The notes below the pieces were generated by a model. It was given only the letters and a program-made list of their open reading frames with translations, had not been told where the DNA came from and made no database searches. Positions 21,989-41,314 of a DNA stretch of 41,314 nucleotides are shown here, one piece after another. A program made the translations under genes and the position numbers. Positions within the stretch are counted from its first letter, which is position 1, and every line of letters starts with the position of its first letter. The DNA is from Basidiobolus meristosporus CBS 931.73 (taxonomy: Eukaryota; Fungi; Basidiobolomycota). The stretch is taken from the NCBI GenBank assembly GCA_002104905.1, contig MCFE01000735.1, positions 1 through 41,314 on the forward strand, read 5' to 3'.

Positions 21989-23120
21989 TGTGCTCTATTC
22001 TAAAGTTTCCTCTAATAAAGCTGATTCCTTGAAAAGTTTATCTCAATATAATCTGATGTATTTATCTGATCATTTGCATTTACCTCAATATTATCATCAA
22101 CTGCATGCAATTTGCTTAACTGCAAATGAATAGGTGAGGTTTTAGCATGTGAGCTGCAGGATATATAGTCAGGTACCAACAAGAACTCTAATTGTATGTT
22201 GCATTGCTCTTTGAAAATACTCTCAGATTGTTTTGCATACCAAATACCCTTCCTGGTAAATTTGCTTGTAGTCATTGGTTAGAATCATCAACAGTACTTA
22301 CCTGTTCCAAGTAATAAGAATTACATTTTGTACAAAATTGCTTTGCGGTTGCTGTCTACATGCTTTATGCTGAATGGGTGCAAGTGGGGATTGAGTTTTA
22401 AATGCCATCACTTGGTGTGCAGAAGGTTCAACACTATGCATGGTAAAGTTCCATAAGTATATTGCATGTTGCCTTTATATCCCATTTGATTATGTGGCAA
22501 AGCCAATAAATCACTATGGAGAAGCTACTTGCTCAACTTTCACAAAGCATTCTTGTGACATACAGTGACTATCTTATATAGCAACAGCCAGAATCCAACA
22601 AAATGGAGCATGCTGACTTGGTGAGAGATTTTTATTGCTGAAATCAAAACACTACATATACAAATATAAATAGTTGCTACTTCTCTATACATAGTGCAGT
22701 TGGTCTGCTATAGTAGTTAATAGATGAATGAGCTTATGCCAATTTCATTTATGAAGAAATCTCCAAAATCAAATCTGGTGGAGATATATCTGCTCCTTGT
22801 GGAGTTGATTATAGAGCTGAGTATTTTCAAAGCATATATTGTTGTCAGCATTGCAGATAGGGCTTCAACAAAGGTCTGCAAAGGCATTCAAGTGCAAGTA
22901 CTGTGTGGGATCTTGTGCTTGAAGATTTCAGGGAGCACCAGAGGTGATAGGGCAAAGAAGAGCTGCATATTGTAATCCTAAGCTTAAGCACAGCATATCA
23001 GCCGTATGGGAATGCTGTAGCTCTACTGTCATAGTATCATAGGAAGGGTCCCAGCAGGTGGTGTGCAGAGTCTAGAATCTTTCCAAAGACATTCAAAATT
23101 CTCATAAACTGGATATTCAG

Positions 23121-23470
23121 TGTTGTACTTTTACATTATACCTAAATGTTCACCTAACTTGGTCACTTGGATCATAGCTTACAAACCTTACAGAATTCTG
23201 GCCAAATTCCTTGTTAGGATTCACTTGAAATATCTTCACCATTGTATTAGGTCCTCAGAGCATGAGATATCAATAAGTTATCCAAGCAGCCCCAAACTAT
23301 TCAAGTATGCTCTTGGGACCTTCCTGGACATTTTCAATGTGTTTTTTTGGCCCAGGCCATGTAGCAATATAAATACAACTCTTCCATTTGACAAATCATT
23401 AAGTGAGAGTCACAAAATCTACAAGTTCTCCTAATCACTTCCAATGTCTTTGTACATAAAAACAGCAACA
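23121..23470 (+). mobile_element. Diverged LTR of the same copia family, followed by a decayed PBS
   Basis: TGTTGTA...CAGCAACA, colinear with the other LTRs. Followed by GGTAGTTACCCAAGAAGCTG, compared with GGTTATGAGCCCCAAGCTG after the younger 5' LTRs. Confidence 0.8.
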
Positions 23471-27350: not shown

Positions 27351-28015
27351 TGAAGCTTGGTGATAATGGTAATATCTGTTGCTTGGATATGATGTATAAT
27401 GCTGATGACTGCTACGGATATGCGAAGCTGTGTTGACACGTTGTTGCAACCTTATCACTTCTTATCCACACACAGATAAACCTAAGGAACAGTCTTCAGT
27501 GGGAAGCAAATGTTGAAGTGTCATGATTTTTATGGCTACAGTGTTATATTGCAACAAAATATTGCAATTTGGTTCTTTAATAGTGCATTACATTCATTGA
27601 TGCCGTGATTTTGATGTATTACGGTTCTTTTTCATATGTGTATATATACGGAATCTTTGTCCCTGTTGTTGTTTAGGGTTATTAGCCATTTCAAATCATG
27701 TCTGCATTTCAAATCAATTGCCGCAATTTCGGACTTCCATTTTGGCTACGGTATTCAGACCAGCTACGAGTAGCCAGAAGTGCATGTGTTATAGTGGACA
27801 TGGCATGAGTGATGGTCCTGATATTGTATTAATAAAGCAGAAATAATTGCTGTTATTTCCATAGTCAGTAACAAGCTTTAGAGCATAGTCATTAAATATA
27901 GCAAGATTTTAGGAAATACTGGAGGTGACTGAGTTAACCGGAAGAATTATGTAACATTCACTTGCTTTATTAAGCTCAAATACAGTACATATACCTGGCG
28001 GGAAACTTTATAAAC

Positions 28016-28493
28016 TGTTTGAAGAGTTTTGGAGATATTGGAAGCAATTGTAAGAACAAGCAAGTTATGTTGTTTTCATTCAATGATTTATTGAATGTAA
28101 AAGTAGTATTTATACTTTATTTAGTCTTGGCAAAAAACATGTAAAATACGCTTAGGAAGACCCCAAGAATATGTGTGCAAAGTTTGGGGCTGTTTGGACA
28201 ACTTTAAGAAAAGCCATGTTCTGGATGCCTGATGCTTTATTGAAAATATTTTAAGTAAATCCCAACAAGAGTTTTGGTCAGTATTCTCTAAGACTTGCAG
28301 GTAATGATCTAAGTGAGTAGGTAAGATGAATACATAGGTGCAATTACAAATTTCAAAAACACTCCCACTCAACCAAATATTCACATGAACTAAATCTAAT
28401 TGTCATATGTGATTTTCAAACTTCTTGATAGCTAATTGTTTAGTAAATATGGCTGTAATAGCTTCATCTGTAGGATAGTAAGCTAAGTTAACT
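28016..28493 (-). mobile_element. Copia 3' end (RNase H tail, PPT, 3' LTR 28016-28361), inverted
   Basis: The reverse complement reads GGTTGAGTGGGAG-TGTTTTTGAAATTTGTAATTGCACC...CTCTTCAAACA and matches about 610-1093. Confidence 0.8.
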
Positions 28494-28881
28494 ATATTGA
28501 AAGAGCTTTGGAAATACTGGGAGTGATTGGGAGAACAAGTTGATTTTGTGGCTTAATCCTATGTTTTGTAGGTAGTGATTTAAGTACTAAGTTAGGTTAA
28601 TATTCATGTGGAATTACAAATTTTCTCAACACTCCTACTCAACTAAATATGCATATTAGCTAATCCTATTTATGTTATACAATAATCATATTTGTCACTA
28701 GCTAGTTACTTAGTAAATATGTCAGCAATCATTTTGTCTGTAAGAGAGTAGACTAAGCTAACTAAGTTGTTTTCTATGACTTTATGCGTGATAAGGTGTT
28801 TAGTATCTATGTGCTTAATTCTAGCCTGAAAAGATGGATTTCTACCTAATTCTAAACATCCCTGACTATCTTGAACAAATG
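28494..28881 (-). mobile_element. Second copia 3' end with an internally deleted LTR (about 28494-28631), inverted
   Basis: The reverse complement has the RNase H tail, PPT AGTTGAGTAGGAG, the LTR start TGTTGAGAAAATTTGTAATTCCAC and the LTR end. About 200 bp of the LTR middle is missing. Confidence 0.75.
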
Positions 28882-28962
28882 TGTTGTAAAAACTTGTAAT
28901 TCCACCTAAATATTAACCCAATGTAGTCACTAAAGTTATTACCTGCAAATCTTGGAGCACAC
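28882..28962 (+). mobile_element. Truncated copia LTR (first 80 bp or so only)
   Basis: TGTTGTAAAAACTTGTAATTCCACCTAAATATT... matches the LTR start, then breaks off at degenerate telomere-like repeats. Confidence 0.75.
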
Positions 28963-28977
28963 CTTGGGTCAGGGTTA

Positions 28978-29281
28978 CAGGGGAGACAGTGATCAGCAGG
29001 TGAAAACTTTATTTCAATTGAAACAAAGAATCTAGAACCACTGTTGTAGCTCTGATATCAGAGTGTGTGGCTAAGGGGAATTTGAAGGTAAGTTAATGAG
29101 GAGAGATGATAGTTCTTCAGTCCTCAAGACACCATTTAGTTGGAAGAGGGTAGCAAGAGAGGTAAGAATGATTAGTGAGCATCATAAATAAGGGGAATAT
29201 GATAAGGATTGATATTCATTATATTGGGAGTGTGCTATTTCAGATATTACTGTCAAAGGGCAGTGAAGTACTTCAGGTAGG
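28978..29281 (-). mobile_element. Old 3'-end relic of the telomeric LINE family, interrupted by a copia insertion
   Basis: Aligns by eye with 36508-36813 (GGGGAGACAG...GGTGAAA.CTTTATTTCA.TTGAAACAAAGAA...TACTTCAGGTAGG), in the same orientation as the distal array. Confidence 0.85.
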
Positions 29282-31170
29282 TGTTGTAAAAATTTGTATT
29301 TCCACCTAAATATTCACCTAACTTAGTCACTTAGATCATTACCCTCAAATCCTAGAGAATACTGACCAAATTCCTTGTTGGGATTTACTTAAAATATTTT
29401 CACCAAAATACCAGGTACCCAGAACATGAAAATTCTCAAAGTTGTCCAAACAGCCCCAGACTTTGCATACATGTTCTTTGGACCTTCCTTAACCTATTCT
29501 ATGTTTTTGTAATGCCAAGACCAGGTAAAAGCATAAGTACTACTTTTACATTCAATAAATCATTGAGTGAAAACCACAAAATCTACTTGTTCTCCCAATC
29601 ACTTCCAATATCTCCAAGACTCTTACAACAGGTTATGAGCCCCAAGCTGTCACTCTCTGCAATGTCTACTACTGCTATTACTGGAATTTTTCCCTCTGCT
29701 GAAAAGTTGGATGGATCTAACTACCAAGTGTGGAATGTGAAGATGAAGATGCTGCTACAAGAAAGAGGCCTTTGTGATATTGTCATGGGAGAAGAATGCC
29801 CTCCTAAAAATGTGGGAGAGGAAGCCTTAAAGTAGCAGAAGAAAGAACAAAGTGCCTTTAACTGCAATTGCCTTAATGTTAAGGACAAATTGCTAATTCA
29901 ATGCTCAAGAGCAAAAATGGCAAAGAATGCCTGGAAAGCATTAGAAGATACCTACAAGTCATGTTCAGCTGCCAAGAAGATGTATCTGGGACAAAAATTC
30001 TTTACTACAAAGATGCTGCCAGGAGAAGAAATGAAAAATCTAATTAACAGAATTACCCTGCTGGTAGATGAAATGGAATTGGTGGGCATACCAACTACTG
30101 ATGAGGATGTGATAGTTACCATCCTGAATATCCTGACAGACAAGTTTCAGGGCCTTGTATCAGCCCTAGAGTCTAGAACTGAAGATTTGACATTAAACTA
30201 TGTATATAGAAGGCTCCTGGATGAAGAATTAAGGAAATCAAGCACCAATAAGAAGGATGAAGAAAATGCTTTAATAAGCAATGATAACCAACAAAGGAGG
30301 TACCCAAGACCCTACAAAGGCAACAGCAACCTATTTTGCAACTACTGCAAAAGGAAAGGACACACATCAGACCGGTGCTTCAAAAAAAGATAGTCAGTGG
30401 AAAAAGTATGAATATGGAAATGTGGCAACAACTGAAGATAGACTATTCATATCTGCACTTAATATGACCACAAACAAGGATTATCAGACATGGTATATTG
30501 ACTCTGGAGCATTTCAACACTTTACACACCAAAAAGAACTTTTTACCCAGTATCAAGAAATTCCAATTAAGAAGGTTTTCATGGATGACAATAGGACACT
30601 TGATGCAGTAGGAGAAGGAACTATCCACGTATGCCTAGGATGCAGTGAAGGAAGCCATACACAGACCTTTAAAGAAGGACTCTATGTACCAGAAATAGTC
30701 AAGAACCTACTATTTGTAAGCAAGGCCACAGCAGAAGGACTCAGTTTCAGCTTTGACAATTCCGGATGCAAGATCACAAATCAAAATGGTGCACATATTG
30801 CTTTGGGTATCAGAGATCAGAATCCTTACAAGTTGACTTATATTCCATCATATTTGGAAGCAAATATAAGTAACTAAAATGAAGAAACCCCAATGCTTTA
30901 GCACAGGAGATTTGGGCACATCAATTTTGATTATTTGCGCAAAATGATCAAAGATCAGCGAATATCTGGAGTAAAAATTGATCCCCCAGCTAATTTGGAG
31001 CACTGTGAAGCCTGCATATATGGGAAACAATCCAGACAACCAATCACAAGCTCTGGGTTAATCAAAACTAAGAGAAAATTAGATCAAATTCACTCAGATC
31101 TGTGTGGACCCATGCAAAAATTATACTTAGGCGGGGAGAAATATTTGATTACCTTTATTGATGATAATAC
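29282..31170 (+). mobile_element. Ty1/copia element 1: 5' LTR 29282-29630, PBS, gag, protease and start of integrase; inactivated and interrupted
   Basis: EKLDGSNYQVW (gag), CNYCKRKGHTSDRC knuckle, WYIDSGA (protease), HRRFGH...CEACIYGK, IHSDLCGP...FIDD. Stop at 29833 and a frameshift near 30385. Confidence 0.93.
29631..29642 (+). promoter_or_regulatory. Primer-binding site complementary to the tRNAiMet anticodon stem-loop (half-tRNA type)
   Basis: GGTTATGAGCCC immediately after the LTR ...ACAACA. It is the reverse complement of GGGCUCAUAACC in the yeast initiator tRNA anticodon arm. Confidence 0.85.
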
Positions 31171-33402
31171 TGTAGTAAAAATTCATATTTCCACCTAAAT
31201 ATTCACCTAACTTAGTCACTTAGATCATCACCTTCAAATCCTTGAGAATACTGACCAAATTCCTTGTCGGCATTTACTTAGAATATTTTCACCAAAATGC
31301 CAGGTACCCAGAACATGAAAATTCTCAAAGTTGTCCAAACAGCCCCAAAATTTGCACACATGTTCTTGGGATCTTTCTTAACCTATTCTATGTGTTTGTA
31401 ATGCCAAGACCAGGTAAAAGCATAAATACTACTTTCACATTCAATAAATCATTGAGTGAAAACCACATAATCTACTTGTTCTCCCAATCACTTCCAATAT
31501 CTCCAAGACTCTTACAACAGGTTATGAGCCCCAAGCTGTCACTCTCTGCAATGTCTACTACTGCTATTACTGGAATTTTTCCCTCTGCTGAAAAGTTAGA
31601 TGGCTCTAACTACCAAGTGTGGAAGGTGAAGATGAAGATGCTGCTACAAGAAATAGGCCTTTGGGATATTGTCATGGGAGAAGAATGCCCTCCTAAAAAC
31701 GTGGGAGAGGAAGCCTTAAAGTACCAGAAGAAAGAACAAAGTGCCTTTAACTGCATTTGCCTTAATGTCAAGGACAAATTGCTAATTCAATGCTCAAGAG
31801 CAAAAACGGCAAAGAATGCCTGGAAGGCATTAGAAGACACCTACAAATCATGTTCAGCTGCTACAAAAATGTATCTGAGACAAAAATTCTTTACTACAAA
31901 GATGCTGCCAGGAGAAGTAATGAAAAATCTAATTAACAGAATTACCCTGCTGGTAGATGAGATGGAATCTGTGGGCATACCAACTACTGATGAGGATGTG
32001 ATAGTTACCATCCTGAATAGCCTGACAGACAAGTCTCAGGGCCTTGTATCAGCCCTAGAGTCCAGAACTCAAGATTTGACCTTAAATTACGTATATGGAA
32101 GGCTCCTGGATGAAGAATTAAGAAAATCAAGCGCCAATAAGAAGGAAGAAGAAAATGCTTTAATAAGCAATGATAACCAGCAAAGGAGGTACCCAAGACC
32201 CTACAAAGGCAACAGCAACCTATTTTGCAACTACTGCAAAAGGAAAGGACACACATCAGACCAGTGTTTCAAAAAGAGAGATTATCAGCAAAAGAAGCCT
32301 GAATATGGAAATGCTGCAACAACTGAAGATAGACTATTCATATCTGCACTAAATATGACCACAAACAAGGATTCTCAGATGTGATATATTTACTCTGGAG
32401 CTTCTCAACACTTTACACACCAAAATGAACTTTTTACCCAATATCAAGAAAATCCAATTAAGAAGGTTTTCATGGGTGACAATAGAACACTTGATGCAGT
32501 GGGAGAAGGAACTATTCAAGTAAACCTTAGAGGCAGTGAAGGAAGCCATACACTGACCTTTAAAGAAGTACTCTATGTACCAGAAATAGCCAAGAACCTA
32601 CTCTCTGTAAGCAAGGCCACAGCAGAAGGACTCAGTTTCAGTTTTGACAATTCTGGATGCAGGATCACTGATCAAAATGGTGCTCATATTGCTTTGGGCA
32701 TCAGAGATCAAAATCTATACAAGTTGACTTATATTCCATCATATCTGGAAGCCAATTTAAGTAACTTAAATGCAGAAACACCAATGCTTTGGCACAGGAG
32801 ATTTGGACACATCAATTTTGATTATTTGCGAAAAATGATCCAAGATCAGCAAATTTCTGGAGTGAAAATTGATCCCCCAGCTAATTAGGAGCACTGTGAA
32901 GCCTGCATATATGGGAAACAAGCCAGACAACCGTTCAAGAGCTCTGGGTTAATCAAAACTAAGAAAAAATTAGATCTAATTCACTCAGATCTGTGTGGAC
33001 CTATGCAAAATTTATCCTTAGGCAGGATGAAGTATTTAATCACTTTTATTGATGATTATACAAGATACACATGGGTCTACTTCATGGAGAGAAAGGAAGA
33101 AGCTCTGTCTAAGTTCAGGGAGTTTAAAGCCATGGTGGAGAGAGAAACCGGTGAAAAAATCAAGAAAATACACTCTGACAATGGTGGAGAATATACCTCA
33201 AAACTCTTCATCCACTTCTGCAAAATTCATGGGATAAAGCAAGAGACTACTGTACCATACTCCCCACAGCAAAATGGAGTAGCAGAACAAGCTAACAGAT
33301 CAATAATTGATATGGCAAGATCTATGATCCGTGATCAAAAATTATCCTGTGATTTTTGGGCGGAATCAGTTGCCACTGCTGTATATCTTAAAAATAGGAG
33401 TT
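31171..33402 (+). mobile_element. Ty1/copia element 2 (same family) nested in element 1: 5' LTR 31171-31519, PBS 31520-31531, gag-PR-IN, 3'-truncated
   Basis: Gag is open through the knuckle. Stop at 32382 in the protease region. Integrase core FIDDYTRYTWVYF...IHSDNGGEY...PQQNGVAEQANR, and homology ends after YLKNRS. Confidence 0.93.
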
Positions 33403-34985
33403 ATAACAGAATACTTTGTGATTCTTATCTATTCAATATTGCTATTAGCAATCATAGTGGTGTCTATACTTAATTCTCTAAATTCTTTTGTGTGATAGCT
33501 TATGGTGCTTGTAATGCCAGTTTGGCTTGCACAATGAGTTGCAGAATTTTTGCAGTAAAATTAGTAGCACTCACAAATAATTCAGCTTGTAATATACCTA
33601 CAAATAGCTATGGACTTGTTGATAAAATGCTGCATAGTAATTTTATTTCTTTTCAGCAGCAAAGCCCATTATATTTGCACTCTCACATGAAACATCATAG
33701 TTGTCTACAGTTGTAATTACTGCACAATCAATCCTGCTCAATGTGTTTTAATATGTTAAGTTTCTTGAAAGAAAATATACAGATACAGTTATATTAACAT
33801 CCAGCCAAGAATACCATCAACCATGATTGATTCTTATTCTCAATATATGCATGCATTATGGTGGTGTAGAGGTACTCCAGGGAGAAGCTACACAACTCAA
33901 GATGTGTGAGATGTCTGTTGGGTTCAATAACCTCTGGGTCTAAACTGCTGCTTTCTTTGTCAATATGTAACTATGGTAAAAGCTCCTGCTTCTCTAGCTT
34001 CCTTGGTGCTCCAAGTGTCTCCAAAGGCCTCTGTGTGTCTTGTGCATAACCCTGAAAAGCTCCTTGATGGCAGGTCTGAGGTGTAACTGTAGAAGGCAGG
34101 TGCAGTGGTCAACTGCTAATCAATAAGGGAGAAGTATTTCTGATAGATGGGATGATTTATTGATAGGGTTTGACTTCCCTTAAATACTTTTCCAGATTGC
34201 CAAGTGATTACTAATGACAAGGTTCTAGAAAATTCCAGGCATCAGAGGAATTCTTGATGACATCACTATGAGCTAAAAATACTTCAAGGAGGTTGTGGAA
34301 GGTTCTAAAAGGCACAGCACATCCAACCAATCAGGGATCAGTAGTCTGAGACCTGTGTAGCATAGAGATACCATACATGGTACTAATATGGTGGGGATGG
34401 TAACACAGACTTAGGTCATGTGTCATGGGTACTGACACAGGTACTTGCCTAATGTGGATACATATACTAATCAGAAAGCTGAGCAACATCTGGGATAACT
34501 AATGCTATCAATTAATTAGGGTAAACATCATATGGGGATAATACAAATAATATGGGCAATATAAGAATGGGATAATACTGATAAGATAAAATATGGATAA
34601 GTGTATCATGATAGCTATATGAATAAACTTGTATGTAGGAGGTATGTTTACCCTACCACAGCATTCAATCAGGTTTCCTATATATATGAGGCAAATACCT
34701 GTATTTTGGTGACAGAGTCCTGGCCTGGCAAGACCTTGGCATGGTGGATGTTGAATACATGATACATGGATAGCTGGGTAGAATATGCTTCCCACCAACT
34801 CTCATGATTTGAGTCCAGCAGGAGGTGCAGTGGTATTCTAGTGTGGTTGTAAGGCTTAGCATGGTAAATGAGCAGTTCAAACAAAAGCACCCCCAGCTCA
34901 CTCCACAAAAACTATTCAAATACAAGGTGTCACTGTTGAATGGCAGCCCAAATATGTTAATTGAGTGACAACATTCTTGGTTACC

Positions 34986-35358
34986 TTAGGGGGAGGAAAG
35001 TCACCAAGTAGTGAAATCCTTATTTACTTATGACAAGTATCTAAAGAAGCCAAGTTAATCTGAAGTTATTCCTAGAAAGCTAGGTCTGAGAGATATCTTC
35101 CTGGTAAGCCAGGTCTGAGAGTTGAGAAGCTGAGTGGTACTATATTTCCTAGTTAGCTAGGTCTGAGAGAGGTTTCCTGGAAAGCCTGGCTTGAGAAGTG
35201 AGAATCTGAATATATCTGAGCTAACTTATACTGGTTTGCGGTAGCTGAATTGTGACCGGAATGGCCAGTAGACTGGGGGAACTGAGATGAATTTCTGGGC
35301 AATCACTGGCAATATTTACTGGGCAAATCTGGCCAATTAGCATTTCAAGGATTTCAGC
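34986..35358 (-). mobile_element. Putative non-autonomous (SINE-like) member of the telomeric array: LINE-type 3' tail with a non-coding repetitive body
   Basis: TTAGGGGGAGGAAAGTCACCAAGTAGTGAAATCCTTATTT...AAAGAAGCCA matches the tail at 35359. The body has no ORF2 homology and contains four copies of a roughly 29-bp motif, TTCCT(A/G)G..AGC(T/C)(A/T)GG(T)CT. Confidence 0.6.
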
Positions 35359-36135
35359 TTAGGGGGGAGGGAAAGTCACCAAGTTGGTGAAATCTTTATT
35401 TGAGTTAAGAACTGATCTAAGTACAAATAAAGAAGCCAATCAAGAGGTCTAGAACCTCTCTAATAAGTAGTCTAATTTATGTTTTGTTTCATCTCTGATG
35501 TTTGTTTCAATAAAGTAAAGATCATCAGGGGTAAATATAAAATTCAAGGGTTTTGGGGGAAGTACAAATTGTAGATGTTTCTGATCAATATAATCCAAGT
35601 CTGGAACACAGCCTGGGATTAGGTGTAGTAGGAAAGGTGTGTGAACTTGTAAGTAGCTCTGCCACATAGATCTTAGATGGTCCTGAGCCAGTAGTCTTGG
35701 CTTCTCAGCTTTTTGAAGTTTTGAAGTAAGCTCTGTTACTACAGCAGAGCCAACCAGGGTGTGCCAGCAAGAAGATTTCAGGGAGGAGTTAGATTTAAGC
35801 CATTGTTTGATGGAGGGGTTGTGTGATTTCTGAAGTTTGACTAGGAAGGAAGCACAGAGATAGACCATTTGGATTTGGCATGGGTAGAACCAAAAGGCTC
35901 CATTAGTTGCATGGATATAGGGAGATACTGGAAGATAAGGTACCAAGGATTTGATACACTGATGGAGAAATTTATCCAGGTGGTGAAGCTCACTGGAGGT
36001 TAGGGGTATAATGTGGAGACCAAATTCAAGTACTGGCAGTACATACTGCTTCAGAAGTATAGGGATCTTTGGAATTGGAGTGTCTGGAGTGACTACTACC
36101 AGAAGCTTTTTGAGAGCCTGTTGGGCAAGATGGGC
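35359..36135 (-). mobile_element. 5'-truncated copy of a divergent subfamily of the telomeric LINE (ORF2 C-terminus open, stop at 35449)
   Basis: LKQYVLPVLEFGL...LDKF...CIKSLVP.LP..PY.HA..GAF...SCW.T..G...EKP.L...L..W..YLQ.HTPF aligns with the C-terminus of ORF2 at 36569-39322. The 3' end is TTAGGGGGG. Confidence 0.88.
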
Positions 36136-36503
36136 TAGGGGGAGACAGTCACCAACAGGTGAAATCTTTATTTCAGTAGAAATAAAGAAGCCAGCGCTAC
36201 TGTTGTAGCTTTGATACAAGAGTGTGTAGCTGAGGGGAATTTGTAGGTAAGTTCATAAAAGTGATGATAGCTCTTCAGTGCTCAAGACACTGTTCAGTGG
36301 GAAGGGGGGTAGCAAGAGAGGTAAGAATGACTTGTGAACAACATTAATGAGGGGAATGTGATAAGGATTGATATTCATCATAAACGGAATGTGCTGCTGC
36401 AGATATTGCTGCCAAAGTGCTGTCAAGTACTTCAGGTAGGCCAGCTTGGGTATTTCTGACTGCAGAATATAGTAAACAAACTTCTTGACTTCAGGATCTC
36501 CAA
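36136..36503 (-). mobile_element. 5'-truncated (about 370 bp) copy closely related to the full-length telomeric LINE
   Basis: Near-identical to 36506-36872. The 3' end TAGGGGGAGACAGTCACC joins the previous element, and the copy ends at ...GGATCTCCAA. Confidence 0.92.
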
Positions 36504-36568
36504 GTTAGGGGGGGAGACAGTCACCAACAGGTGAAATCTTTATTTCAGTTGAAACAAAGAAGCCAGCG

Positions 36569-39337
36569 CTACTGTTGTAGCTTTGATACAAGAGTGTGTA
36601 GCTGAGGGGAGTTTGTAGGTACGTTAATAAGAAGTGATGATAGTTCTTCAGTGCTCAAGACACTGTTCAGTGGGAAGGGGGGTAGCAAGAGAGGTAAGAA
36701 TGACTTGTGAACAACATTAATGAGGGGAATGTGATAAGGATTGATATTCATCATAAAGGGAGTGTGCTGCTGCAGATATTGCTGCCAAAGGTCTGTCAAG
36801 TACTTCAGGTAGGCCAGCTTGGGTTTTTCTGACTGCAGAATAAATTCTGCAAACTTCTTGACTTCAGGATCTCCAAGTATAGTTCTCCAGCAGGAGCCAG
36901 GTGTTGTGTGGTGTGTTCTCTTCCAGGCCTTAATCAGTGGGTTGTTGCAGTGGTGAAGTCTGAGATATAATCTGGTTCTAAGGTAGAGAAGTCTGATCTT
37001 ATAGGGCATAAACCCAAAAGCACCAAGAATAGCATGTCTGTAGGGGCATTCAGGCAAATGAGGCACCAAGGAGGTAATGCACCATACTGCAAACTTGTCA
37101 AGCTTAGTGCAGTCTCTAGAAGTAAGAGAGAGAAGTGGTAAGCCAAATTCCAGTACAGGGAAGACAAACTGCTTGAGTAGAAGAAGGCAGCTGGGAGCTG
37201 AAGTTGTAGGAGGAGTAACAGCCAGTAGCTTGTGGAGTGCCTGTCTTGCCAGGATAATTCTCTTCTTCAGGTGTGCTCCAGAGTCTAGTCCAGTAGGAAG
37301 GAAAGGAAAGCCAAGATATGTAGCAGAAACCTGAGCAGGTAGAGTGGAGTTCTCTAAGGTGATGGGAGAGCCCAAAGGTACTGTCTTTGCAATGGAAAGC
37401 TGGAGATTATTCTTCTGCAGATACTGGTGGATGGTCTGGGAGTCTTGTTGCACATTGGAGGAGGATATTCTGATGTCATCAGCAAAGAGAGTAACCAGGC
37501 AGTCAGCTGAGAGTCTTGGGAAATCATTCAGGAAGATGGCAAACAGTATAGGACCAAGCACAGAGCCTTGAACCACTCCATTAGGAACTGAGAACACAGC
37601 TGATTGCTCACTTGGGTGCAGAATTCTTGCTTGTGGATCCAGAAACAGGGACCTGACAAGGAGGGTGAGAGAGGTACTGGAGAAGCATTGCAACTTGGAC
37701 CAAAGCAGATTTCTGTCAACTGAATCAAAGGCCTTAGTAATATCAAACAGAACTGAGGGATACTTGCACTGGAGAGAGTGATCTTGGCTAAGTATGACTG
37801 CATATTCCAAGGAGAGGCCAGGAACAAAGCCAAACTGTGCAGGATGAAACTTGAGGGAGTCAGAGTAGAGCTCCTGAGCAAGCAGAAGCTCAAACACCTT
37901 TCTGCAGGTGGGCAGCAGAGATATTGGCCTGTAGGAGCTAGGATCCAGGTGCTTTCCTTTACCCTTGTACAGTGGCAGAACATTTGCAAAGGACCATTCC
38001 TCAGGAGTAGAAAGCTGGGCTGAGCATTGCTGAAACAGTGGAAGCAGAAGTGCAGACATGGCCTTGGTACTAGTCTTCAGAAGCTCATAGGAGATTGTGT
38101 CCACACCTGGAGCAGTAGAGTTGGGAAGCCTCTTGAGCACATTATGGATTCTCCTTTGATCAAGTGCAAGTGGGATGGGCAGAGTCTTGAAGTCAGGATG
38201 AAAGCCAGGAGTTGAGTACTGCTTTGTAGAGAAGAAGATGTTAGCCAGCTGTTCTGTTGAAGGTAACTTCCTGGAAGAGGGCCTCATTGCCCTGTAGAGT
38301 CTTGATACTGTTCTTGTTATAGAGTTGGAAGATTGCAGAGGCAAGGAACTCATAATATGATCCCAGAGCTGAGTATGCAGAGTGTGGTGAATTGCCTTGG
38401 AGTGGTGTATTGCTATCAGGAGGAGTTTCTCTGTTTTTGGGTTAGGGAAACTCAGGTAGCTTTGTTGCAGGGCTGAAACAATGGATTCCCATTTTCTTGA
38501 GGTAACAGCAGTAGTCTTGCATGGCAGTGAGAGGGAGGCAGACACCAGAATCAGATGCTTCACAAAGAGCCAGGCATAGTTGAGATCATCTGGCAGAGAA
38601 AGTAGCAAACTGGCAAGCTTCAAGTAGTTCCCAAAGTCTTTCTTCTGATTCTTGGTAGCTTTGTGGGTGAGCACAGTAAGTTTTGGCAGCTTCTTCTTCA
38701 CAACTGGTTGCATAGAAAGGGACCAGGCTGGGTGGTCAGAGGCTCTCAAGGATCCTAGCTCAGCTCCAGAGAATTGCTTAACTTCATCCACAAAGTAGAG
38801 GGCAGCAGCAGAAGGGCAGATCCAGTCAACACATCTTTTCTCAGATTGAGCACCTAGTGCTAGCAGATGGCTTTCTCTCAGGAAGTTCAGTAGGAATGTA
38901 GACCTTGGCTTCATTCTTGCAGTCAGAGTAGTCTTGTTCTCAGGATGGGGAATGTTGAGATCTCCAAGCAAGATAATAGGTGTTGATATAGATTGCTGGT
39001 ATTGCTGAACTTTCTGGCATATAACTTGCACTTCCTGAAGGGCAAGACTTGGAGGCAGATAGCAGAGCACCAGACTGATAGTTGGCAACTGGAGAGCAGC
39101 ACAGTAAGGGGAGTAAAGAGGAACACAGAGCTGAGGAGTATTAATGGTAGAAGAGATGAAGCAGATAGAGGAGGTATTCTTTGTTCTAGGAGTAGAAAAG
39201 CAATATAGATTAGTCAAAAGTATAGAGGGTAGCTGAACATCAATCAAACACAGGAGGGAAAATCTTGAAAGAAGTCTCTCTAGAGTTGGTCTTGATGGCT
39301 GTATGCTGTTGCAGTTAAGCAACAGAACTTCAGGTAG
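36569..39337 (-). CDS. LINE ORF2: AP-endonuclease plus reverse transcriptase (922 codons after the ORF1 stop; no ATG before residue 137 of the track translation)
   Basis: APE motifs LLLNCN, LCYLPP, LLGDLN, RCVDWI and SDH. RT motifs APGVDTI, YRPISLL, QFGF, FDITKAFDSV, GVVQGSVLGPILF, FADD and YLG. No RNase H or C-terminal CCHC was seen. Confidence 0.93.
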   Translation of the reverse strand, partial: LPEVLLLNCNSIQPSRPTLERLLSRFSLLCLIDVQLPSILLTNLYCFSTPRTKNTSSICFISSTINTPQLCVPLYSPYCAALQLPTISLVLCYLPPSLALQEVQVICQKVQQYQQSISTPIILLGDLNIPHPENKTTLTARMKPRSTFLLNFLRESHLLALGAQSEKRCVDWICPSAAALYFVDEVKQFSGAELGSLRASDHPAWSLSMQPVVKKKLPKLTVLTHKATKNQKKDFGNYLKLASLLLSLPDDLNYAWLFVKHLILVSASLSLPCKTTAVTSRKWESIVSALQQSYLSFPNPKTEKLLLIAIHHSKAIHHTLHTQLWDHIMSSLPLQSSNSITRTVSRLYRAMRPSSRKLPSTEQLANIFFSTKQYSTPGFHPDFKTLPIPLALDQRRIHNVLKRLPNSTAPGVDTISYELLKTSTKAMSALLLPLFQQCSAQLSTPEEWSFANVLPLYKGKGKHLDPSSYRPISLLPTCRKVFELLLAQELYSDSLKFHPAQFGFVPGLSLEYAVILSQDHSLQCKYPSVLFDITKAFDSVDRNLLWSKLQCFSSTSLTLLVRSLFLDPQARILHPSEQSAVFSVPNGVVQGSVLGPILFAIFLNDFPRLSADCLVTLFADDIRISSSNVQQDSQTIHQYLQKNNLQLSIAKTVPLGSPITLENSTLPAQVSATYLGFPFLPTGLDSGAHLKKRIILARQALHKLLAVTPPTTSAPSCLLLLKQFVFPVLEFGLPLLSLTSRDCTKLDKFAVWCITSLVPHLPECPYRHAILGAFGFMPYKIRLLYLRTRLYLRLHHCNNPLIKAWKRTHHTTPGSCWRTILGDPEVKKFAEFILQSEKPKLAYLKYLTDLWQQYLQQHTPFMMNINPYHIPLINVVHKSFLPLLLPPFPLNSVLSTEELSSLLINVPTNSPQLHTLVSKLQQ

Positions 39338-40846
39338 TCAGGCAGAGGTTGTAGCTTCTTCAGAGGCAGCATTGACAATGTGACCTGCAGAGTCCCAGAG
39401 CTCTTCAAATGGTGCATCACTTAAGTCAGCAAGGAGGGAAATGGCATGGTTCTTGAGGAAGTATGCCACATCATAGGAGGGGGCTTGTCTCTTGATGGCA
39501 GCAAAGAAAGACAGAATGGCAACATGGGCTGGAGGCTTGTTGAACAGTAGAGAGTCAGAGGATTCAGATTCTTCAGGCACTATCTTGAAGTCAGTTTTCA
39601 GCCAGTTAAGGTTCTTCTCCACAAAGGCAACAAATGGGTCAGCAATGTTTTGGTCTAGGATAACCTCCAGAATCTTCCCTTTTCTCCAGGCCAGGTTGAC
39701 AATTCTTGAGTGCTGAATATTGCATGCCTTGAGTGCTTTCCTGATGTTGGAAATGGGAGTCCAGGGAACTTGCTTCAAGTACACCACAGTCCAGGTAGAA
39801 GCTGGTGGTAGGTTTGCTGGGGGCTTGTAAGTCCTTCTGTGTGGCAATGGAGCTGCAGTAGTCAGATTGGAGTCCACATTCTCAGTAGAGGGTTTTCTTG
39901 ATGTGTCTTGCTGAATGGTACTGGAGCTGGATGTGTTGATAATTCTTGCTAGAACCTTGCCTGCATAAGTCTGAGGTATAGCTGAGGTGACTGTAGAGGT
40001 GGTGGCAGCTGGTGCAGGTGGAGAGGCAGAAACTGAAGCAGGAACTGAGGTCACCTGGGAGAAGGCAGTAGAAGCAGGTTTTCTGGGAGGAACAGAGTTC
40101 ACTATCCAGTTGTTCTGTAAAACACTGGAGTAGCTTTTCTGTGGAACAGGATCTTGCTCTTGAACAGGAACAGAAGCAGCAGGCTGGGGCTGAGCAGTAG
40201 TGGTAAGGCAGTGGCACTCCAAGGAAGCTTTTTGCAAGGCATCTCTGGCAGTTTTCAGGGCAGTATTGGCTTCATTCTTAAGCTTCTTGCATTGGGCATC
40301 CAGTCTCTTGTTTTCAATAGTCAGGGCAGTATTGGCAGCCTCTAAATCAGCAATTCTCTTCTCAATTGCAAGGAATCTCTGAAGAAATGCATCAGTAGAA
40401 GTGCTGGCATCTGGGAGCGCAGTGGCAGGAATAGAGTCCATTGACAGTGGGCTTCTTGGAGGCAAGGAAAGTGGACTGGCAGATTCAGGCACAAAAGGAG
40501 ATATCCTGGCAGGAGGAGAAGGAGTATCCAAGGCAGTAACAGAGGCAATTCTTGTTGGTGAAGCAGCAGCAGGGGAGGCAAGCCTGTTCAGAAACTGGGC
40601 AGGAGAGAGTGCTTGAGGAGAGGGAGTCTTCAGCTTGCCAAGCATGTCTTCCATCAGAGTGATACCAATATTCCTGGTGCATTTGCAGAGAAAAGTAAGC
40701 TTCCTGAGTCTGCCAGCTCTTCCATTCCTTCTGATAGTTCCTTTGTTTCCACAGTTGGGGCAAGAAATCTTCTTGATAGACTTGTCAAAGCAATCAAGAA
40801 CCTTCCTTTCAGGTGTAGTGGGCTCCTGTTGAGGTTTTGGTGGCAT
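39338..40846 (-). CDS. LINE ORF1 (502 aa from ATG 40846): N-terminal Cys4 zinc-ribbon-like motif, coiled coil, Pro/Ser/Thr linkers and a C-terminal alpha/beta domain
   Basis: CPNCGNKGTIRRNG...FLCKC; heptad-rich FLQRFLAIEKRIADLEAANTALTIENKRL; WTVVYLKQVPWTPISNIRKAL. It lies directly upstream of ORF2. Confidence 0.85.
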   Translation of the reverse strand: MPPKPQQEPTTPERKVLDCFDKSIKKISCPNCGNKGTIRRNGRAGRLRKLTFLCKCTRNIGITLMEDMLGKLKTPSPQALSPAQFLNRLASPAAASPTRIASVTALDTPSPPARISPFVPESASPLSLPPRSPLSMDSIPATALPDASTSTDAFLQRFLAIEKRIADLEAANTALTIENKRLDAQCKKLKNEANTALKTARDALQKASLECHCLTTTAQPQPAASVPVQEQDPVPQKSYSSVLQNNWIVNSVPPRKPASTAFSQVTSVPASVSASPPAPAATTSTVTSAIPQTYAGKVLARIINTSSSSTIQQDTSRKPSTENVDSNLTTAAPLPHRRTYKPPANLPPASTWTVVYLKQVPWTPISNIRKALKACNIQHSRIVNLAWRKGKILEVILDQNIADPFVAFVEKNLNWLKTDFKIVPEESESSDSLLFNKPPAHVAILSFFAAIKRQAPSYDVAYFLKNHAISLLADLSDAPFEELWDSAGHIVNAASEEATTSA

Positions 40847-40915
40847 ATCCAGAGTTTCAGCTTCAAATTTCAATTTTTGAGATTTTTGGGTGATTTTTGA
40901 TGGGCGGGATCAAAA

Positions 40916-40929
40916 TTAGGGTTAGGGTT
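40916..40929 (+). repeat. Internal telomeric tract TTAGGGTTAGGGTT in the LINE 5' region
   Basis: Read directly; about 140 bp proximal to the terminal array. Confidence 0.9.
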
Positions 40930-41070
40930 GCGCGCTGTGACTGCTTTTTACGATCGCAAGGTCAGAACCTAGGAAAAAATAAAAATAGTTAGTAAAGGTG
41001 ATTTAATGGATGGATGGATGGATTCGGAGTCAGATTCAATCAAAAAATCAAATCGTTGACTAATTTAAGA

Positions 41071-41314
41071 GGTTAGGGTTAGGGTTAGGGTTAGGGTTAG
41101 GGTTAGGGTTAGGTTAGGGTTAGGGTTAGGGTTAGGGTTAGGGTTAGGGTTAGGGTTAGGGTTAGGGTTAGGGTTAGGGTTAGGGTTAGGGTTAGGGTTA
41201 GGGTTAGGGTTAGGGTTAGGGTTAGGGTTAGGGTTAGGGTTAGGGTTAGGGTTAGGGTTAGGGTTAGGGTTAGGGTTAGGGTTAGGGTTAGGGTTAGGGT
41301 TAGGGTTAGGTTAG
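41071..41314 (+). repeat. Telomere, (TTAGGG)n, about 40 units, G-strand running towards the window end
   Basis: Direct repeat array to the last base, with one TTAGG variant near 41109-41113. Confidence 0.99.

Follow-up and report, generated by a model that had tools for sequence, protein, structure and literature searches.

A telomere-specific community of APE-type LINEs and a SINE-like passenger that probably builds a chromosome end of the fungus Basidiobolus meristosporus

The contig MCFE01000735.1 of Basidiobolus meristosporus CBS 931.73 (GenBank assembly GCA_002104905.1; positions 1 to 41,314, the whole 41,314-nucleotide stretch being referred to here as the window) ends in a stack of retrotransposons without long terminal repeats (non-LTR elements) that lies directly beneath a telomere tract. 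The reading that we favor, at a probability of about 80%, is that this chromosome end has been built outward by a telomere-specific community of non-LTR elements, comprising at least two families of long interspersed nuclear elements (LINEs) in the window and more elsewhere, together with a non-coding passenger that resembles a short interspersed nuclear element (SINE). A 3' module of ~65-75 nt is common to all members of the community. This LINE/SINE community appears telomere-specific and is probably active.

A one-way stack under the telomere tract

The plus strand of the contig ends in a telomere tract with the G strand outward (41072-41314, 243 bp). Four element pieces are stacked inside it, and an older fragment of the same orientation lies ~12 kb inside the present chromosome end:

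28971-29281, minus strand: fossil 3' end of LINE family A, matching 40 copies of this family at 85% identity, all on one strand
34986-35358, minus strand: SINE-like non-coding element, 5'-truncated (3' 373 bp of ~527 bp), with TTA + G5 + tail at 34986
35359-36134, minus strand: LINE family B, 5'-truncated (3' 776 bp), comprising the end of open reading frame 2 (ORF2) and the 3' tail, assigned by homology to family A ORF2
36135-36504, minus strand: 369-bp 3' piece of LINE family A, 5'-truncated, aligning to full-copy positions 7-375 at 95.4%
36505-41071, minus strand: full-length LINE of family A, 4567 bp, with 29 other near-full copies at 98.3-99.9% identity
41072-41314, plus strand: terminal telomere tract of 38 perfect TTAGGG units and three variant units, G strand 5' to 3' to the contig end

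The original prediction, made from the letters of the window, placed four telomere-type 3' junctions on one strand, and all are present: TTAGGGGG at 34986, TTAGGGGGG at 35359, CTAGGGGG at 36135, and GTTAGGGGGGG at 36504. On the plus strand, each leads into a common module of ~40 nt that consists of a G-run, AGxxAGTCACC, a loop, and GGTGAAATCTTTATTT; viewed on the minus strand, this module is the conserved 3' end ...AAATAAAGATTTCACC-loop-GGTGA-CTGTCT-C5-7-TAA. All four 3' junctions share one strand, and the 5' ends of the elements face the terminal (TTAGGG)n tract. The prediction had also described the pieces as four elements of a LINE family; the stack and its polarity stand, whereas the pieces themselves are a SINE-like element, a family B LINE, and two family A LINEs.

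The SINE-like piece has a median identity of 96% to 18 copies, and unitigs from the source sample run past 35358 into the missing part of this element. The family B ORF shares 42% amino acid identity with the C-terminus of family A ORF2 over 211 aa (E 4e-43), and other family B copies extend beyond 36130-36133 in source-sample reads. The 369-bp family A piece is truncated rather than interrupted, because its missing 5' part is absent distal to the next element. The outermost element has both ORFs open, and at its 5' end it directly adjoins the terminal tract (from 41072), as had been noted for this distal copy. Identity to the rest of each family, from the inside outward, is 85%, 96%, 96%, 96%, and 99%, and the innermost fragment, at 28971-29281, still shows a decayed GGGTTAcAGGGGAGACAG tail.

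Copies and junctions across the genome

A genome search gave 44 matches, of which 30 loci were fetched (L-numbers denote fetched loci); distances to ends cover these 30 loci only, and contig ends were inferred from terminal tracts and from flanks shorter than requested. All 44 matches were printed as plus strand, which is unexpected for randomly oriented contigs and is probably a reporting convention. The genome holds at least 32 near-full LINE copies at 98-100% identity, and both ORFs are full length in ~22 of the 30 fetched copies. A terminal TTAGGG tract of 150-240 bp ends 16 of the 30 loci, within ~1.3 kb of the 5' end of the element, and most of the other loci continue into further same-sense elements. 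Together with the telomere-phase letters found at all junctions, this agrees with the predicted specialization for TTAGGG ends.

The tail module recurs at 83 junctions in the 30 loci, and all 83 lie on the G-strand-continuous strand, which is the polarity that had been likened to HeT-A/TART and TRAS. TTA precedes 73 of these junctions (the rest have CTA, GTA, GGA, or TAA), the G-run ranges from 4 to 10, and none of the 83 has poly(A). The telomere-phase stretch upstream is shorter than 12 nt (under two units) in 75 of the 83; interior tracts have at most 4 units, compared with 25-40 units in terminal tracts. The 5'-truncated fragments (369, 716, 830, 942, 1095 bp, and others) have one constant 3' end, and upstream of the junctions the flanks consist largely of unique sequence, or of other elements that break off at varied internal points.

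Read evidence comes from source-sample unitigs, in which depth is not a copy number and the terminal repeat tract is left out. These contain dozens of joints at which the interior of one element meets the 3' start of another across a linker of 0-13 letters (TA, TAG, G, GGGTTA, and TAGGGTTA are examples), as well as ~20 different flanks, ending in GGGTTA, before 36504-36509. The joints confirm the diversity of flanks independently of the assembly.

Taken together, the junction counts with their single polarity, the unitig joints, and the age gradient fit serial outward addition, and stand against passive accumulation and against a pattern created by assembly collapse. Many fungal subtelomeres collect repeats, and the window at 22-35 kb contains other repeat families in both orientations, as might suit a LINE of the ordinary, non-specific kind with better survival where genes are few, as in subtelomeres; however, the uniform polarity of all 83 junctions, the lack of poly(A), the telomere-complementary tail, the head-to-tail stacking, and the position of the outermost 5' ends directly under the terminal tract make this explanation highly improbable.

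Non-LINE sequence distal to the stack is shared by three loci (L024:6630-6850, L025:6770-6990, and L022:~40-110), and includes G5/C5 hairpins and a head-to-head telomere-like TTAGGGTTAGAATTCCTCCTCCTAACCC; unique AT-rich DNA lies beyond it. This sequence could be another element type, or an old end that has been internalized or fused.

A shared 3' tail and its SINE-like passenger

The shared tail is represented in the full-length LINE by the following feature:

36505-36568, minus strand: 3' untranslated region (UTR) module, 64 nt, with hairpin 1 (CUUCUUUGUUUC/GAAAUAAAGA), hairpin 2 (UCACC/GGUGA), and single-stranded CUGUCU-C7-UAA

The tail RNA folds (z -3.2) into two hairpins, after which it ends in a C-rich, single-stranded tail. 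The order TGGCTTCTTTRTTT...AAATAAAGATTTCACC-loop-GGTGA...C-run-TAA is common to 10 aligned lineages, which include LINE families and the non-coding element as well as relatives found in other samples; 97% of cells in the alignment pair, vs. 41-55% with the partner columns slid. The closing pair of hairpin 1 covaries (AU, GC, CG, UG), and loops range from 3 to ~30 nt; covariation support is limited to this one pair because most stem positions are invariant. In all lineages the sense strand ends in ...C5-7TAA, often followed by CCCTAA, which is the complement of the telomeric G strand. An AAUAAA in the tail may be a poly(A) signal (with cleavage at C7UA), or, because it lies inside the conserved hairpin 1, a structural part of that hairpin.

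In stringent LINE/SINE pairs, the reverse transcriptase (RT) recognizes a structured 3' tail shared by both partners, and the passenger SINE borrows this tail. The full SINE-like copy, at L024:5878-6404 (~527 bp, non-coding), has a B-box-like GGTTCAAATCC ~60 nt from its 5' end, recognized by eye. No tRNA was identified in the head of this copy by ARAGORN or Rfam, which leaves the B-box-like motif as the one hint of a Pol III/tRNA origin. At L007:6069-6120 and in L016, the 5' end of a full-length LINE is followed by a variant of the tail (TTAGG-AGAAGGTGAGAA-GTCATCA-ATG-TGATGAA-TCTAT), which suggests that the community includes more divergent families.

Organization of the full-length LINE

Upstream of the 3' module, the full-length element has the following parts:

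40847-41071, minus strand: 5' UTR, holding an internal telomere-like 14-mer TTAGGGTTAGGGTT (plus strand 40916-40929) and a 101-bp terminal monomer
39341-40846, minus strand: ORF1, 502 aa from the first AUG, with a zinc-ribbon-like N-terminus (CxxC...CxC), a coiled coil, a domain resembling an RNA recognition motif (RRM), and a helical C-terminus
39338-39340, minus strand: in-frame UGA followed by CUA, a candidate read-through stop and the single stop between ORF1 and ORF2
36569-39337, minus strand: ORF2, with an endonuclease resembling apurinic/apyrimidinic endonuclease (APE), a linker, an RT, and a C-terminal domain (RVT_1, E 2.6e-25; Exo_endo_phos_2, E 5e-4, which is below the Pfam cut-off)
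38708-39337, minus strand: compact APE-fold endonuclease, ~205 aa, assigned from an AlphaFold 2 model (mean predicted local distance difference test [pLDDT] 91.3) and Foldseek
37304-37942, minus strand: RT core (Pfam RVT_1, residues 461-673)

The 5' end of the LINE is identical in most copies. Its 101-bp monomer (40971-41071) is present in tandem 1-3 times in L004, L009, L015, and L029, and might serve as a promoter unit or buffer the element against erosion of the end. Extra monomers are located at L004:6067-6265, L015:6067-6264, and L029:6072-6271, and are sometimes cut short.

For ORF1, the AlphaFold 2 model includes a coiled-coil helix at residues 152-209 (pLDDT ~86) and a beta-alpha-beta-beta-alpha domain at 350-420, within a poor overall fold (mean pLDDT 56). 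The best structural match to this domain is a Prp24 RRM (Z 7.4, a weak match within the grey zone of the tool), so that the model is suggestive of an RRM-like C-terminal domain. The C-terminal 165 aa are strongly conserved across four lineages, and the nearest ORF1 clusters in the Atlas, which are unnamed, are from Mucoromycota and Zoopagomycota.

In each copy that has both ORFs open, ORF1 and ORF2 lie in the same frame and are separated by a single stop. The context GCx-TGA-CT(A/C) recurs in four lineages (three of them from other samples), the ORF2 proteins of which are 48-63% identical, and the APE domain begins 5-7 codons after the stop. The first AUG in ORF2 is at about residue 137, past several catalytic motifs. 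Based on the shared frame, the single stop, and the recurrence of its context in three further lineages, we infer that ORF2 is made as an ORF1-ORF2 read-through fusion.

The observed/expected CpG ratio is 0.04 in the intact LINE (36504-41068), compared with 0.86 in the genes of the window, while GpC is normal (1.16); the few remaining CpGs are mostly in the 5' UTR, as assessed by eye. GC skew of the LINE is +0.24 on the G-strand-continuous strand, and no G-quadruplex motif was found on either strand of the LINE (36504-41068).

Endonuclease and reverse transcriptase of ORF2

The endonuclease model was built on an alignment with APE-RT elements of ~900 aa from arthropods. In a Foldseek search, the first match to this model is the TRAS1 endonuclease (1wdu; E 4e-11, TM 0.68), followed by the L1 endonuclease and APE1 (E 2e-10 to 3e-9); the margin is too small for the rank of TRAS1 to be an argument for TRAS kinship. 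A PDB sequence search gave no match to the endonuclease. Residues Y93, G125, D126, N128, D171, S200, and H202 are invariant in the arthropod alignment, and D201 is nearly so. The domain retains the motifs N, Y, GDxN, H, D, and SDH, including the N-terminal Asn in those lineages that cover this position, and one surface loop is ~10 aa shorter. On the basis of these motifs and the predicted fold, with RVT_1 behind it, the domain is judged to be APE-type, as predicted, and under selection.

Residues 350-602 of ORF2, which overlap the RT core, match human L1 ORF2p in a PDB sequence search (E 6e-13). A search for R1-clade traits found neither CCHC zinc knuckles in ORF1, where the N-terminal CxxC...CxC is the only such motif, nor a Cys-rich motif after the RT; the C-terminus of ORF2 has a single conserved Cys. 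ORF2 also has no motif or Pfam match for a restriction-enzyme-like (REL) endonuclease (CCHC...RHD...E) C-terminal to the RT.

Relatives, host, and neighboring sequence

Beyond its own family, an exhaustive search for relatives of ORF2 gave proteins that are ~30-36% identical over the RT only, from Tribolium, Artemia, a pseudoscorpion, two fishes, aphids, and Parasitella (Mucorales). Their Pfam layouts are APE + RT, one of them with a Myb domain. The names of the hits, their taxa, and these layouts do not single out one LINE clade, and names such as 'jockey' and 'BS', assigned automatically, are no test of clade.

Related LINEs occur in other public samples (L033-L037), with ORF2 63% identical and the same tail, followed by CCCTAA and then by the 5' end of the next element. 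One 2022 sequencing run (X5) holds pieces that are ~98% identical. The presence of related lineages in separate sequencing runs indicates that the system extends beyond this strain. In the window, a VPS10-type gene has its best matches in Glomeromycotina, Mucorales, and chytrids (42-44%), and these matches, together with the ORF1 Atlas clusters, identify the host as an early-diverging fungus, in keeping with the fungal host proposed from the letters.

The interval between the fossil and the present stack (29600-33500) carries duplicated plus-strand ORFs with a copia-type gag signature (LDGSNYQVWNVKMKMLL). Subtelomeric repeats common to other contig ends are located, in both orientations, at 390-1096, 23119-23450, and 28012-28957.

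Proposed outward addition and its alternatives

Under the proposed mechanism, the LINE RNA would be translated to ORF1p (coiled coil and RRM-like domain) and, by read-through of UGA-CUA, to an ORF1-ORF2 fusion. The RT would recognize the hairpin module, so that passengers with the same tail would also be copied. The C-run/UAA tail would anneal to the 3' end of the G strand (...TTA or ...TTAGGG-3') and, by base pairing, prime reverse transcription. Such tail-primed copying would leave a copy without poly(A), with its 5' end always toward the chromosome tip, after which telomerase would add ordinary TTAGGG repeats. Because the antisense cDNA strand is continuous with the telomeric G strand, the primer would be the G-strand 3'-OH. 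A variable G-run is expected if the primer pairs in several registers on C5-7UAA or if the RT slips. TTA is present even after non-telomeric upstream sequence, so at least the UAA would be templated by the RNA, or else would reflect a very short telomerase addition.

The contrast between short interior linkers and terminal tracts of 150-240 bp favors the view that priming usually takes place on ends that are critically short or uncapped, rather than at a random nick within a normal tract, and the very short linkers suggest that elements were added at deprotected ends. Within the general model, we put priming on critically short or uncapped chromosome ends, the state of the end being deduced in this way, at roughly even odds. 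Priming of this kind can be likened to the endonuclease-independent insertion of L1 at dysfunctional telomeres, as reportedly described by Morrish et al. in 2007.

A TRAS-like route would instead have the APE endonuclease nick the G strand inside duplex repeats (e.g., after TTA), with target-primed insertion within the tract and no use of ends. TTA|G at 73 of the 83 junctions, a polarity as in TRAS1, the retention of the APE fold and active-site motifs across lineages at 48-63% identity, and a best structural match to the TRAS1 endonuclease (only narrowly ahead of L1-EN and APE1) are all consistent with this route. However, random nicks in a tract of 35-40 units should leave long proximal runs, whereas 75 of the 83 junctions have fewer than 2 units and interior tracts have at most 4; in addition, many elements are joined directly to the truncated bodies of older elements. 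We regard this route as unlikely, though a serious contender.

Alternatively, the stacks may not be serial: several RNAs could be copied per event by an RT that jumps from one template, at its 5' end or midway, onto the tail of another, and completed stacks could pass from one chromosome end to another by break-induced replication or unequal exchange. In at least four loci (L002, L005, L008, and L009), a full LINE is joined to the SINE-like element by a linker of AAAGAG-GGTTA-G-run. Several LINE copies are preceded by one and the same SINE 5' flank, a single age could account for the three ~96% fragments of the window, and the tandem 101-bp 5' monomers suggest template jumps. Yet most junction flanks are unique, and the window has at least three age classes (85%, 96%, and 99%). 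Jumping would still need a first priming at a G-strand end, and so modifies the end-primed model rather than replacing it; as an account of its own it seems to us rather improbable.

Several points weigh against serial addition at chromosome ends. Conservation of the endonuclease by selection argues that nicking matters, and an endonuclease-dependent route fits this at least as well; the position of the catalytic Glu is occupied by Asp in all four lineages. Several full-length inner elements join the next element by GGTTA only. Since erosion is unlikely to stop exactly at a 5' end, RT template jumping or end recombination probably made some of these joints. Three loci have non-element sequence distal to the stack, and there may be interstitial copies beyond the 30 fetched loci.

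Comparison with known telomeric retroelements

Retrotransposons specific to telomeres occur in insects, Giardia, Chlorella, and rotifers, and in a small number of higher fungi. A 2023 survey of known telomeric retroelements lists SART/TRAS, GilM/GilT, Zepp1, MoTeR1, Tx1-1_ACar, Athena, and the Drosophila elements, MoTeR being the sole fungal LINE-like case (PMC10088271). The 2025 FoTeR paper (PMC12857005) assigns the fungal telomeric elements, which carry a restriction-like endonuclease, to the CRE clade. In the literature on Basidiobolus telomeres and retrotransposons, our coverage of which is incomplete, we found no description of this system, nor of any APE-type telomeric LINE in fungi, and this is absence of evidence only.

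MoTeR, FoTeR, and Cnl1 (CRE clade) have a REL endonuclease C-terminal to the RT (PMC12857005), and the reported telomeric LINEs of other fungi are of this type, as the original prediction had stated for MoTeR and Cnl1. They resemble the Basidiobolus elements in being fungal and telomere-confined, in lying within TTAGGG repeats, and in their variable tandem repeats at the 5' end (PMC12857005), but the endonuclease of the Basidiobolus LINE is an N-terminal APE fold, and a REL motif is absent.

TRAS1 and SART1 of Bombyx mori (R1 clade) likewise combine an APE endonuclease and RT with specificity for the telomere repeat of the host, beside telomerase-type repeats, and the sense strand of TRAS is also collinear with the C strand. 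They differ in having poly(A) and long repeat runs, whereas the Basidiobolus elements have a C5-7UAA tail and linkers of fewer than 2 units at 75 of 83 junctions; in addition, the hosts are insects rather than a fungus, and CCHC knuckles are absent here.

HeT-A, TART, and TAHRE of Drosophila (Jockey clade) also form one-way head-to-tail stacks with 3' ends toward the centromere and proximal copies that are older and 5'-truncated, and they include autonomous and non-autonomous partners, with TART and TAHRE keeping the APE domain. In contrast to their attachment by oligo(A) at ends without telomerase repeats, the Basidiobolus elements have a telomere-mimic tail and TTAGGG caps (16 of 30 loci); ORF1 of the Drosophila elements is a CCHC gag, as opposed to the coiled coil and RRM-like domain here.

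The endonuclease-deficient Penelope-like elements Athena and Coprina similarly have a telomere-complementary 3' end, and occur in species with telomerase, including fungi. In work of 2007 by Gladyshev and Arkhipova, cited in PMC10088271, the telomere-repeat complement at the 3' end of Athena/Coprina is reported to be able to pair with the G-overhang, so that reverse transcription can be primed at chromosome ends. These elements encode a Penelope-type RT without an endonuclease, unlike the two-ORF LINE described here, with its APE-fold domain and L1-like RT match. The stringent pairs of the L2 group (such as the eel UnaL2/UnaSINE1) share the lack of poly(A), a conserved 3' stem-loop with a short repeat, and a SINE-borrowed tail; they differ in that the terminal repeat in Basidiobolus is the telomere complement, which would make a general mechanism end-specific.

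The coexistence of telomerase and these elements offers a way to ask how both compete for, or share, chromosome ends, and is relevant to the possible evolutionary origin of the Drosophila state. Tentatively, and well short of even odds, a telomerase-bearing fungus may keep a Drosophila-like back-up, in which the tail mimics the telomerase template, elements heal short or broken ends, and telomerase re-caps them, the elements thus being facultative partners in maintenance rather than simple parasites; if true, the fungus would represent an extant stage linking telomerase-only telomeres to those made of retrotransposons only. Features otherwise known from separate systems are joined in Basidiobolus: its LINE is of the APE type, like TRAS and TART, and has a telomere-complementary RNA tail (as in endonuclease-less Penelope-like elements) and probable stringent 3'-hairpin recognition with a tail-sharing passenger, in Drosophila-style one-way stacks under TTAGGG caps.

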